DNA of 64,000 nucleotides from Bugula neritina (taxonomy: Eukaryota; Animalia; Bryozoa). Made by a program: the position numbers and the translations under genes. The stretch covers positions 19,174,628 through 19,238,627 of the forward strand of contig OZ037767.1 of the NCBI GenBank assembly GCA_964035545.1, written 5' to 3'. Positions within the stretch are counted from its first letter, which is position 1. Each line of letters begins with the position of its first letter. Positions 4,166 through 51,034 of the stretch are shown here, in pieces. A model generated the notes under the pieces. It was not told where the DNA came from and ran no database searches. It saw only the letters and a list, made by a program, of their open reading frames with translations.

Positions 4166-6521
4166 ATGGCACGGATTTGGGTGCTTGGTTTGTTAAGCAT
4201 GGTTTTTCTCACTGGTAAGAATATGTACATTTTTACAGCGCAACTAGTTGCATACTAGAATGCATCATATTCATTACTTCTTGTTTGTTATCATTTTATG
4301 GCAATGTTTTAAATGTGGTTATGCTTTGCTTCAATGCAGTGTTTAGCATCAAATTGCTGTTAATATTTAAACTTAGATGCTGCCCCTGGTAATGTAACAT
4401 TCAGCAGCAGATACTTAGGCTGTTACAAAGACGGCTGGTCGAGAACTTTAGACGGTCTTTACTCAAGAACTGCTGACAGCGTTACTCTTTGTACTTCCTT
4501 CTGCTATGAAAATGGTAAAGATTCTAACAATTTAGGCATTTTTCTACAGAAATAGTAAATAATTAAATATTATTTGCAAAATATCACTATGCAAGCTCAA
4601 AAAACTTTGATGCATCTTAGACACCTGCATGAAATAGAATATGGTCAATATGAAAGTTATGGAAATTATTGCTTATAGTGAGTGAAATCTAGTTAGATCT
4701 TCTAGCATTTTTTTTTTACTTATAAGATACATTAGAAGTATCAAACACTATAGAAATTATGAACTATAAAACATTTCTGATAATGCAGAAAACTTTTTAT
4801 ATTTGTTTGTTTTGGGCAATAATAAAATAAACACACTTCCTAAAATTTGTTTCTGACAATCTAAGCTAGCAACCTCACAATGAGGAGATGCAACAATTCA
4901 AGAGGACCACCTGGCGCAGCCATGACACCTCAACATAAAAGGAGGTTGAGGATGACATAAAAACTATAAATTATGGCTAAAGTTAATTTCGCTTTTTAGC
5001 ACAGCATAATAATTATGAGAATATATAAAAACATGCAGAAATGTTTTTGCTGTTTGCAATTTCTACAGATCCTTAATTTTAGCAAAATTTTTAAATGCCT
5101 AATTTGTCTTATTATAGGAAGCAAAATAAAATGTGGTCTTTGAATTGACGTGTTGCTTTAATTTAAATAAAATTTGATTTTTGAGACGTCTTTGAAAATT
5201 AGTTTAAAGAACTGTTTACAAAAGTACTTTTATATGAGATTGTTAATATATAAGTTGCTCGGAGAGTCTTGTTATACTCATTTCAGTTGCATGAACACAT
5301 GCTCATTGAAACACTTTGTCTGCTTTGAAAGTCATTTGAGTATTCTCTTGTGTTCCTCTTTCTACATTACATATATTGTGGTTATATAACACTGTGCTGT
5401 AGTAAGTATATACTAGTAACAGGTTCCATATGATTTAAGCAGCTTGTAATGTAAATGGAATTTAACAAATCGCAGATCAATGAGTTATAACTATAGCTTA
5501 TAATCTTCTTTCTTTCATCTTTCTCAAGGATTCAGATATGCTGGCTCAGAGCATATGAATGAATGTTTCTGTGGTAATGATGGTCTTGAGAAGAATGGTG
5601 GACCCGCTCTTGAAGAGACCTGCAACACTCCGTGTCGAGGCGACCCAACTCAGACGTGTGGCGGAGAATATAGACTTTCAGTCTACGAGTTGTCACCGCT
5701 AACAAAAAGTAAGTGTAGCAGGAATAAGCCAATGGGAAGTGGGTATGATGGTTGTGAACCAATAAAATACAAGTTTAATAGAAATGAATCAAGGAAAAGC
5801 AACTTGAGTAGAATTGAGCCGATAAGAAAATTGAATGAGTTTTATGATGCACATGTACTGAAGAGATTTAACTTTAAATAAACGACAACAGTACAACATG
5901 CCTAATATTTCTAAAAAGATGCTTTGTTGTAAAACTTTGTGCGGAATGTAATTATTCGCCAAATTGTATTTCTAGTTTTGAAACCAATTTCTAAATATCC
6001 TCGCCTTTTAGGAATCAACAAAGAATATAGATATTTAATACAGTGTAGCTAGGCATATGAAGGGTTTCCAGGATACAATAGTTCAAGCAGAATATACAGA
6101 ATTCACAGCTGTATGTAGAGTTAGATGCTCTTTTGTTTGTAAGAGAAGAGAATTTGACACTTTATAGTATAGGAATATGTTTGAAAATACCTCAAGCAGC
6201 TTCTTTTTCTATTTAATGAGCAGCTAAATTACTAACAAATTTAGGATATGCATTTTCAATTTACAACTTATTACAGGGACAGAGGAAGTCTTTGTTTTTT
6301 TGGAGGGAGATATTAGCAACTTGAAGGTGATGTCTACTGGACAAAATCAGACTCAAGAGCAATGCATCTTTGCCTGTCTCAATAACATCTTCTGTGAAGG
6401 ATATACTTATGACAGAGCTGATGGCACATGCAAGCACTTTGAGAGAACCTGCTCTTCAGCTTCTATAAATATGACACAAGTCTATCTTGTGAAGTCGAAA
6501 TTCAGCCAGAATTATTGCTAA
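4166..6521 (+). CDS. Secreted WSC + PAN/Apple-like protein, copy 1 (203 aa). Exons 4166-4214, 4377-4514, 5529-5708, 6277-6521
   Basis: All introns phase 1, GT-AG. Signal peptide MARIWVLGLLSMVFLT. WSC signature YLGCY.D...C..FC...GFRYAG....ECFCG...C..PC.G.....CGG..RLSVY (8 Cys). PAN-like [26 protein letters not shown]. Confidence 0.9.
5709..5830 (+). repeat. Degenerate 30-bp repeat ladder at start of intron 3 (copy 1)
   Basis: Units start at 5709 (GTAAGT), 5739 (GTGGGT), 5769 and 5799; each ends in a CCAATRARAA-like motif. Confidence 0.7.
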
Positions 6522-7316
6522 AAAATAATTAAAAAGCTGATTGGTATACAAAACAGCTTCATCTAAATTCTACAATTGATATATGACATATTGCATAAAA
6601 TCTTCTTGGAGTTTTATAGACATTGTAAACTAGGGTTCTCCCTAGAGCAAGTCTATGGTGAACATACGGATACACATTTTATACAAATTTGGTGTCATAT
6701 AAGTAGCTCAATAATTTTAGTGACTCATCTATAATGTTGTAAGTGGAGTTGTCAATACTTTTTTGTTACAAACAAATCAATTGATGGATTAAATCACATT
6801 CATTGTTCCCAATAGTTAATCTTTCTATGGGCCGAAATTATGTCAACAGGACTTAGGCCTACTATAACTTATTACAGCAACGCCTCTTTCTCTTTTGGAC
6901 TGTTTGATATTTTTCAGCATAGAATCTTTTGCCAAATGATTTCCAGCTTCTCAAACAATTTGAAAGAAATTTGTTTTTGTGTAGGAAGTAATATATTTAG
7001 CAATTATAATTAAAATATTTCTAGCTCAGTAGAATATTACAATATTTGAAACTGTTATTTTTTTCCTTTTCTAAAACAACTTTAAAAGTAATGTACCCGT
7101 TGTCAACAAAAAGTTAAACAAATCACCAATTAGCCACAAATGTACATCTAATTTGCAGTGTAGCTATGCACACAAAAGGTGTCTATGGTATACAATATTT
7201 TCATCAAAATAATATACAGAATTCACAACTGTTTTATGTATAGGGCTAGAATAAGTTCTTTGTCTGTGAGGGAGACAATTTTGAAATTTTACTGCTATTG
7301 TAGGCATTTGTTTGAA

Positions 7317-7505
7317 TCCGTGGTCTAGGGGGTTAGAGCATTTGCCTAGTAAACAAAAGGTCATGGGCAATTGGTAATGTTAGGAAAAGCATCCAGTCAT
7401 AATTGCTCCTGTGCCTCATTTAAATAAGTCCTTAGCCCGCTTTAACAAAAACTCTTTTCATCAGGAGTTTCTTAGAGAGATAGCGGTTATAAACTTGCGT
7501 GAGTT
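7317..7505 (+). mobile_element. tRNA-Thr(AGT)-derived SINE, partly deleted head
   Basis: Homologous to 24710-24914. Flanked by a 16-bp near-perfect duplication TAGG(C/T)ATTTGTTTGAA at 7301-7316 and 7507-7522. Confidence 0.75.
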
Positions 7506-49591: not shown

Positions 49592-50890
49592 GTCTATGCT
49601 TCTTCTTTTTAAATTATTTTCTTACTGTGGCTTATCAAAAGTTGATGTCAGTTGTTTGTTTTGACAGATATTCATACTGCGCACAGTTTGAACTCTGTTT
49701 TATTATATTTCTAAATCCTATTATTGATTTTGTACATTTTAAATTATTATTGATTCTAACCTATCTCCACTTTGTTTTGTATGAGTAGCAGCAAATCCAG
49801 CAATACATTATTAATACAGGCGTACAATTACCCTATGTATATGATAGAGCAAGGAATTTGATAATTACCCAAGCATCAAACATTCCAATGCTAGTTTTTC
49901 TCAAGGAAGCAAAATCCGTGTTTACCTACTTTTATATTTTTAGAAGCTTAAACATTCAACTTAAACAAACTAAAATTTTAATATAAAAATTCTGCTGTCT
50001 GTTGATTGATGGACGAACTATTGCATAACTTACAGACTATAAGCAACCTTAGAAATGAAAATAACTGTAACTAAGGCTATGCTACAGTTTGAAAAGGTGG
50101 CTGTGACTAACGGTTGATAAATTATTGAAACAGTCATAGATTCAAGTCTTTAAGGTTCCACTTACGTATATATTATATGCCATAATATACCCAGGGACTA
50201 TCACTTGTTCATATCTCACCCAGTTCAATCAATACAAATAAACAAAACTATTCAGATAAGCTTTTGTTGAAGTTATCTTGTTTTTTCACAATATATATGT
50301 AATGATTTGAAAAATATACATTATGTCAATATAATTTTTGTTGGTTGTTGCAATATATATTTGCTCTAAAAAGTAAGAAAAAAACAATGAATACAACCTA
50401 GAAAAACACACAAAGTAGAACTTTGAAATTTACAGTCAAGGTTTTTTCTCTGTAAACAGTCACTTTAAACCAACAAATCCGATGACTTGTTTGCTGCATT
50501 TTACACATTTTGTAGTGAGTTTACATGTGATCACGTGATGTACTTGTTTGTCGGAGAGCATCAGAATGAGGCTTTGTGGTAATAAGTAGTAAATTTGAAT
50601 AGTATAATTTTGGCCCTTAGAAAGGTAAGCTATTGGGATCAATGAATGTGAGTGAATTCATCAAGTGATATGCTTATAACAAACAAGTATTGACTATTCC
50701 AATTACAATACCTCTAAAATTATTGACCTACTTATAGGACACCATATTTGTGTATGTGTGTTCACGTTCATCGAAAACTTGCTCTAGGTTTATATAATGT
50801 CTATAAAATATATTTCTGAAATATATGTCATATATATATCAATTATAGAATTTAGATAAACTTGTATAACAAGTAATATTCACCTATTAA

Positions 50891-51034
50891 TCATTTCCCA
50901 CAGTAATTCTGGCTGAGTTTTGATTTCACAAGATAGACCTCTGTCATATTTATAAAAGCTGAAAAGCAGGTTCTCTCAAGGTGCTTGCTTGTGCCATCAG
51001 CCCTGTCATAAGTATATCCTTCACAAAAGATGTT
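50891..51034 (-). pseudogene. Orphan 3' part of a PAN exon marking the right edge of the array
   Basis: [47 protein letters not shown]; 5' part absent, one Cys changed to Ser. Confidence 0.85.

Follow-up and report, generated by a model that had tools for sequence, protein, structure and literature searches.

What are the small, secreted-looking proteins encoded in tandem in a bryozoan genome, and why do they differ so sharply at a few positions of a conserved frame? The question is raised by a stretch of 64,000 nucleotides (nt), called the window here, of the assembly deposited for Bugula neritina (GCA_964035545.1, contig OZ037767.1, positions 19,174,628 to 19,238,627), which holds six intact genes (g1 to g6) each coding for one WSC domain followed by one PAN module. 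A first-pass annotation had described them as an expanding family with three hypervariable loops, which follow the motifs G-C-Y, Y-A-G and CGG (loops 1, 2 and 3 in this study), on a fixed scaffold. The analysis presented here leads us to favor, with some but not strong confidence, the view that the cluster is a lineage-restricted tandem family of small secreted WSC-PAN glycoproteins, i.e. soluble binders in which the specificity of the WSC face has been diversified by selection.

The motif strings quoted in the first-pass annotation were all found where it had placed them, those of four genes on the plus strand and those of the other two on the minus strand, and its six splice-complete paralogues with common exon phases and 14 cysteines were borne out by the gene models (Table 1). 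All six genes follow a plan of four exons separated by GT-AG introns in phase 1. Exon 1 comprises 15-16 codons, encodes a hydrophobic leader (M-A-x followed by 11-12 hydrophobic residues in every gene) and ends at a phase-1 GT donor; exon 2 measures 138-141 nt, exon 3 180 nt (210 nt in g3) and exon 4, which runs to the stop codon, 245-257 nt. The coding sequences are multiples of three in length and specify 203-215 amino acids (aa). Two in-phase GT donors lie 30 nt apart at the end of exon 3 in g1 (5708/5738), g2 (26499/26529) and g6 (47977/47947), and g3, the most divergent copy, with a loop 1 longer by one residue, has the downstream donor (31686) only. Use of the alternative donors may give rise to splicing variants in which the WSC-PAN linker is altered by 10 residues; the sole database model of the family, EB796_005623 of B. 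neritina, uses the first donor.

Material for comparison came from contigs sequenced earlier from B. neritina, to which this species name refers in the following. When the open frame surrounding exon 3 of g1 was used in a word search, it matched EB796_005623, a protein of 134 aa, and the contig of this protein, VXIV02000786.1 (L001), is collinear with the window at approximately 80-84% identity, introns and spacers included. A human origin of the window was also considered and is rejected by this synteny with a bryozoan genome. Joint Genome Institute (JGI) contigs from Bugula samples (L002, L004 and L005) are 97-100% identical to the B. neritina assembly and approximately 84% identical to the window, and the synonymous divergence (dS) of orthologues between window and B. 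neritina is 0.30-0.32. Judged by these sequence identities, the window genome appears to be that of a bugulid related to, but distinct from, the B. neritina of the earlier contigs. Orthologues were taken of g1 and g2 (L001), of g5 (complete, L002) and of g4 (exons 3-4 only, L002). EB796_005623 (L001 10001-10985) is an N-terminally truncated model with its start methionine inside exon 3; it includes neither the signal peptide nor the N-terminal half of the WSC domain, though the corresponding exons are intact upstream (L001 8174-8222 and 8818-8955).

Pfam scans were run on the exons separately and not on the joined WSC domain, with cut-offs of 27.8 bits for WSC and 21.4 bits for PAN_1. Exon 2 matched positions 1-36 of the WSC profile (PF01822) with 14-16 bits, which is weak when taken alone, and exon 3 matched positions 39-82 with 33.5-40.6 bits, above the cut-off. 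For exon 4, the PAN_1 (PF00024) cut-off was exceeded in g1 (26.6 bits), g4 (26.4 bits) and g5 (25.8 bits) and narrowly missed in g3 (20.5 bits), and matches to PAN_4 and PAN_2 were weaker than those to PAN_1. The domain assignment of the first-pass annotation is upheld by these HMMER scans, for PAN_1 in three genes, and gene models and Pfam matches agree on a tandem, secreted-looking family with a single WSC and a single PAN. Eight cysteines of the WSC domain (three in exon 2 and five in exon 3) and six of the PAN module are invariant in ten sequences, i.e. the six window genes and the four B. neritina orthologues, and so is the CGG motif. The linker between WSC and PAN comprises 5-15 residues and the proteins end 0-4 residues past the last cysteine. 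Neither a Kringle or CUB match in Pfam nor a hydrophobic C-terminus or membrane anchor was found in the six proteins, and none of them contains repetitive, low-complexity or acidic regions of the matrix-protein type. From the hydrophobic exon-1 leader, the WSC-PAN proteins are predicted to be secreted.

To locate the variation, Nei-Gojobori counts were summed over the 15 paralogue pairs. The three loops, which had been picked after viewing the data, showed a nonsynonymous divergence (dN) of 0.66 with saturated dS, compared to a dN of 0.15 and a dS of 0.75 in the rest of the WSC domain, 0.19 and 0.42 in the PAN module, and 0.21 and 0.61 over all mature codons. Hence the loops vary as the first-pass annotation had quoted them and evolve about four times faster in dN than the WSC scaffold, but other positions are equally variable, namely the x of an S-x-T motif eight positions before Cys2 and the residues around Cys6 and Cys7. 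The loops are equalled in variability also by the linker between WSC and PAN, by the mature N-terminus and by the residue that follows G-D. As a side observation, dS in the PAN exon (exon 4) was roughly half of that in the WSC exons. Paralogues gave 0.42 in the PAN exon and 0.75 in the WSC exons, and orthologues gave 0.21-0.24 and 0.38-0.41; for the orthologue values, gene conversion would not be a sufficient explanation.

Codon site models (M0, M1a, M2a, M7, M8 and M8a) were fitted with our own Goldman-Yang likelihood code (GY94, F3x4) to ten sequences with 184 codon columns, which were pooled exon by exon. With one tree, twice the log-likelihood difference (2dlnL) was 29.9 for M1a vs M2a, 34.2 for M7 vs M8 and 30.9 for M8a vs M8, and with the pooled maximum-likelihood topology as an alternative tree it was 28.1 for M1a vs M2a. 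The one-tree fit assigned an omega (dN/dS) of 3.6-4.3 to 6-7.5% of the sites. Approximately half of the codons have an omega of about 0.1. Exon-specific trees were used as well because the exon trees disagree and recombination inflates site tests; with exon-specific trees and branch lengths and omega classes in common, 2dlnL was 17.9 (p = 1.3e-4), with omega2 = 4.0 for 4.5% of the sites. When g3, g5p, both of them, the indel columns or all B. neritina rows were removed, p was 0.0008-0.006, and seven data sets simulated under M1a with the same trees yielded 2dlnL values of at most 0.9, with the parameters recovered. The top posterior sites were column 20 (the fourth residue after G-C-Y, in loop 1) and column 31 (S-x-T) of exon 2, and column 34 (before Cys7) and columns 46-47 (the two residues after CGG) of exon 3. 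Exon-3 column 39 had a high posterior in the one-tree analysis, and the PAN module contained three marginal sites. Neutrality is rejected in favor of a small class of sites (about 2-6%) with omega of about 4, but loop 2 is close to neutral and the signal in the loops is carried by only one loop-1 site and two loop-3 sites; selection is not confined to the quoted loops, since two of the best sites fall outside them.

Whether the variable positions form one face was addressed by homology alignment and not by measured distances. Exon 3 aligns with human Kremen1 (KRM1) over 53 residues without gaps (E = 2e-7), and its five cysteines correspond to KRM1 C167, C169, C186, C190 and C198 with identical spacing. 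In the Kremen1-DKK1 complex, the interface includes the WSC residues D125, N140, E162, S163, Y165 and D201, and an engineered N-glycan at V189 abolishes binding (PMC5014086). E162, S163 and Y165 correspond to exon-3 columns 7, 8 and 10 in loop 2, V189 to column 34 and D201 to column 46, which is the first residue of loop 3. The mean posterior omega at these five KRM1-matched columns was 1.85 vs 0.63 exon-wide (permutation p = 0.002), and two of the three top exon-3 sites fall on them (p = 0.02). In the alignment with yeast Wsc1 (PDB 7PZ2), column 34 corresponds to Y89 and its neighbors to F91 and Y93 (aromatic cluster 3). Y64 and Y70 are the counterparts of loop 2 and of the residue that separates Cys4 from Cys5, and loop 3 lies two residues before Y104 of cluster 2. 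The function of Wsc1 depends on the surface aromatic clusters 1 and 2 (PMC9024836). Tyr, Phe, Trp and His abound at the variable positions of the bryozoan proteins. Searches of the solved structures with exon 2, both by itself and in the form of a nine-row profile, returned no WSC match and only chance antibody matches; because exon 2 matches no solved structure, its mapping to KRM1 and Wsc1 rests on cysteine anchors. The suggestion of a single variable face is supported by the exon-3 positions, which by homology coincide with DKK1 contacts of KRM1, but its exon-2 part was counted from those anchors.

Several points weigh against selection acting on a binding face. Among paralogues, loop dN divided by overall dS is 1.07, and between orthologues the counting method gives a loop omega of 0.4-0.6. 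For loop 2, the posterior omega averages 0.93, i.e. about neutral. Significance comes from pooling only, because exon 3 alone reached p = 0.076 and exon 4 alone p = 0.42. The conflicting exon trees hint at exchange between copies, and within-exon gene conversion, which is known to inflate such tests, is a possible source of the signal. In exon 2, D125 would fall in loop 1 and N140 next to column 31 when counted from the cysteine anchors. AlphaFold2 run on the exon-4 alignment returned a mean predicted local distance difference test score (pLDDT) of 47, with a low-confidence helix over the first two cysteines and a hairpin. Finally, word searches found no transcript or protein evidence for any copy, the only database model being the truncated prediction described above. 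The loop ratios near or below one, the nonsignificant exon 3 and the disagreement of the exon trees are all consistent with relaxed constraint only, under which unconstrained surface loops on a disulphide-locked frame drift neutrally and the selection signal is an artefact of recombination, small sample size or sites chosen post hoc. We nevertheless regard this explanation as unlikely: the likelihood-ratio test holds with exon-specific trees and after removal of sequences or columns, the null simulations never rose above 0.9, and the top sites fall on KRM1 ligand-contact positions beyond chance. Positive selection concentrated on the putative ligand-binding surface appears moderately robust, with small sample size and possible gene conversion as caveats.

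If the cluster is such a family of selected binders, purifying selection would keep the disulphide frame and the core, while a few WSC surface positions (the start of loop L1 after Cys1, S-x-T, the residue before Cys7 and the two residues after CGG) would outpace synonymous sites. The fast positions together with the approximately neutral YAG-x6-C loop would correspond to the face that contacts DKK1 in Kremen1 and to the surface aromatic clusters 2 and 3 of Wsc1. Each paralogue would be a soluble binding protein whose WSC face carries glycan or protein specificity, and the more uniform PAN module may provide a common second contact, e.g. for anchoring or oligomerisation. Duplication combined with selection on the WSC face would then generate a small repertoire of specificities. 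Candidate ligands are glycans of microbes, proteins of the symbiont or of the animal itself, and polysaccharides of the body wall. Ligand binding by the WSC face, the nature of the ligand and the role of PAN are what we infer here.

A HMMER search with the B. neritina model (query P0002) against 1.84 billion representatives returned 1329 matches, the best of which were multi-WSC proteins of molluscs, an annelid and a diplonemid. Top matches apparently extended into the PAN half of the query; this was rejected, for Pfam identified the extension as the next WSC repeat. Among the best 150 of the 1329 matches, those covering the PAN half were limited to Bugula fragments and the Watersipora subatra protein XP_067939949.1, and among the 52 closest listed matches of at most 600 aa the Watersipora protein was the single one with a PAN match. 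Word searches with the g1 exon-3 frame, P0002 and the Watersipora WSC-PAN piece recovered no small relatives outside Bugula. In the literature, we found no description of a secreted family with a single WSC and a single PAN, nor of bryozoan WSC domains. The architecture, which the first-pass annotation had not recognized as a described family, was not found described, but the larger W. subatra protein contains a related junction of WSC and PAN whose exon structure is the same. This uncharacterised protein of 572 aa is the only non-Bugula match, among those listed, that runs from WSC into PAN; it resembles the bryozoan family in a WSC domain split at the same point, in a single PAN exon of 82 codons and in five of six alignable PAN cysteines, and differs from it by at least two WSC domains before the PAN, approximately 130 further residues without family match and the missing last PAN cysteine. 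The XP_067939949.1 gene model (L006 10001-47215, OY755162.1) extends over 37 kb and encloses an unrelated gene with a cold-shock domain; the model seems to be a fusion of two tandem WSC-WSC units, only the second of which has the PAN exon and two further exons.

Kremen1 (WSC structures in PDB 5FWS, 7BZT and others) shares the eight-cysteine frame and the CGG motif with the bryozoan family, but it is a Kringle-WSC-CUB type I membrane receptor that binds Dickkopf and is present in two copies in vertebrates. The bryozoan proteins possess no Kringle, CUB or membrane span, carry a PAN after the WSC and are encoded in a tandem array, so that the likeness is limited to the WSC domain. The fungal WSC proteins (Wsc1, lectins and copper radical oxidases) likewise have the WSC fold in common with the bryozoan family. 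This fold is itself of the PAN/Apple type, with loop L5 wrapped around it, and the bryozoan variable positions align with aromatic clusters 2 and 3 of Wsc1. In the fungal Wsc sensors, however, a Ser/Thr-rich stalk, a membrane span and a cytoplasmic tail stand where the bryozoan proteins have a linker and then PAN, and the fungal WSC lectins contain several WSC domains instead of a single WSC and a single PAN. Fungal oxidases carry WSC or PAN modules ahead of the catalytic domain, again not as one WSC plus one PAN (PMC13390370). Among the matches listed, the closest WSC domains are those of Mytilus galloprovincialis LOC143076337, Magallana gigas A0A8W8I6X5 and Owenia fusiformis CAH1776614.1, with 40-57% identity over the C-terminal half, and these mollusc and annelid proteins differ in having tandem WSC repeats without PAN. 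Invertebrate lectin-like expansions such as the bivalve C1q-domain proteins (PMC6835236) are likewise tandem small secreted binders with a conserved fold and variable binding residues. Compared to these, the bryozoan family has another fold and architecture and is small (six genes in the window). It is a new domain arrangement within the familiar pattern of lineage-specific expansion of secreted binding proteins.

These relatives also bear on a structural role. Fungal WSC domains and PAN modules are known to bind cell-wall polysaccharides, and the bryozoan proteins could be part of the body wall (chitinous or lightly calcified), the larval adhesive or the mucus, where WSC and PAN would bind chitin, glucan or matrix in a generic manner and the paralogues would differ in tissue or stage but not in ligand. 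Such a role would fit the strong purifying selection on the scaffold and the nearest WSC relatives among the matches listed, which are the multi-WSC proteins of molluscs and an annelid; WSC is also among the carbohydrate-binding domains of proteins secreted by the oyster mantle (bioRxiv 10.1101/2023.01.19.524809). It does not predict omega values above 1 at ligand-contact positions, and the repetitive, low-complexity or acidic regions of matrix proteins are missing, and we consider a matrix function quite unlikely.

Bryozoans are colonial animals, and allorecognition had been among the putative roles suggested in the first-pass annotation, beside immune and microbial-glycan recognition. A cue for allorecognition or kin recognition, for which allelic diversity matters, could plausibly be sought in a family that is clustered, secreted and fast-evolving at its putative binding face. 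Alleles of B. neritina were compared between the GenBank assembly, two JGI metagenomes and one sequencing run, which is a very small sample. Across three to four of these independent data sets, the exons of the g2, g4 and g5 orthologues differed by 0-2 nt and by at most one residue. The allorecognition reading is at odds with this lack of extreme allelic polymorphism, read with the sample size in mind, and with proteins that lack a membrane anchor; we judge it highly improbable.

Turnover of the cluster was assessed from gene relics, which were located within the window by tblastn and open reading frame (ORF) listing. At least five relics, one of them doubtful, are found among the six intact genes (Table 1). 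The lone PAN-exon relic downstream of g1 is matched by a degenerate copy in the corresponding position of B. neritina (L001 12395-12586). The interval considered in the first-pass annotation ends, at 51034, inside the truncated PAN-exon relic on the minus strand and not in a seventh gene. The g5 gene is flanked by inverted repeats (I1-I4; 39044-39691 vs 44039-45202, 81-92% complementary) and is inverted compared to the B. neritina contig L002, where its orthologue follows g4 on the same strand. With six intact genes, five relics and one inverted gene, the proposed birth-and-death evolution stands, and the family gains and loses members through local duplication, inversion and decay.

Table 1. 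Genes, gene relics and retroelements in the window (positions in nt from its first letter; L001 and L002 are B. neritina contigs).
Feature	Position	Strand	Description	Evidence or counterpart
g1	4166..6521	+	203 aa; exons 4166-4214, 4377-4514, 5529-5708, 6277-6521	splice sites, phases, Pfam; orthologue L001 8174-10985
g2	23418..27470	+	205 aa; exons 23418-23466, 23763-23900, 26320-26499, 27220-27470	splice sites, phases; orthologue L001 14071-19013
g3	29084..32959	+	215 aa; exons 29084-29129, 30036-30176, 31477-31686, 32709-32959	splice sites, phases, Pfam
g4	34668..38172	+	204 aa; exons 34668-34713, 34890-35027, 36210-36389, 37922-38172	splice sites, phases, Pfam; orthologue exons 3-4 in L002
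g5	40408..44377	-	204 aa; exons 44377-44332, 44152-44015, 43178-42999, 40658-40408	splice sites, phases, Pfam; orthologue in L002
g6	46832..49591	-	206 aa; exons 49591-49546, 49016-48879, 48156-47977, 47088-46832	splice sites, phases
Lone PAN-exon relic	7617..7826	+	downstream of g1; stop codon inside	tblastn, 77% identity to g1 exon 4
Exon-2-like relic	23630..23694	+	truncated; inside g2 intron 1	also in B. neritina
Inverted-repeat arm with relic of g5 5' region	39044..39691	+	exon-2-like piece 39580-39690	tblastn match
PAN-exon-like fragment	40058..40156	-	weak, doubtful	tblastn E = 8e-4
PAN-exon relic	50894..51046	-	5'-truncated; one scaffold Cys changed to Ser	tblastn, ORF listing
Ty3/gypsy-type long terminal repeat (LTR) retroelement	9736-17481	-	ORFs for protease, reverse transcriptase, RNase H, integrase	missing at orthologous B. 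neritina locus
Second element	17821-21496		identical 211-nt direct repeats at ends; gag-like ORFs with CCHC zinc knuckles (18603-19739, 19930-20328)	missing from B. neritina

Approximately 14.7 kb between the g1 relic and g2 (8.3-23 kb) are missing from B. neritina and correspond to two young LTR elements. The Ty3/gypsy-type element has a G+C content of approximately 55%, compared to 32% for the genome, and is bounded by two identical 300-nt LTRs; because these are identical, its insertion was very recent. Outside this one block, the window is AT-rich (approximately 32% G+C). An origin of the GC-rich block at 10-18 kb from foreign or symbiont DNA was considered and rejected, the block being the LTR retroelement. 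Long (TA)n and (CA)n microsatellites are found in introns and spacers of the cluster (27510-27656, 33029-33110 and 48216-48539). Beyond the cluster, an open frame of 270 aa on the plus strand (56349-57161) has no Pfam match and may be an exon of a neighboring gene or have arisen by chance.

To our knowledge, little work has been devoted to animal WSC domains other than those of Kremen and polycystin-1, and very little to innate recognition in bryozoans. If the cluster is only a drifting family of matrix proteins, it is ordinary. If its fast-evolving face carries specificity, the Kremen-type WSC surface would be an old and reusable binding site for proteins or glycans, the six paralogues would be natural variants with which to probe WSC recognition, and the association of Bugula with its symbiont would have, in this family, a candidate factor on the host side. 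A bolder version, which we put forward tentatively and hold to be improbable as it stands, is a private bryozoan recognition repertoire, in which soluble WSC-PAN receptors diversify the face with which Kremen holds Dickkopf, for microbial or symbiont ligands (e.g. of the bryostatin-producing symbiont) or for conspecific ones. If true, this private repertoire would be the first animal case of a WSC domain used as a variable recognition module.

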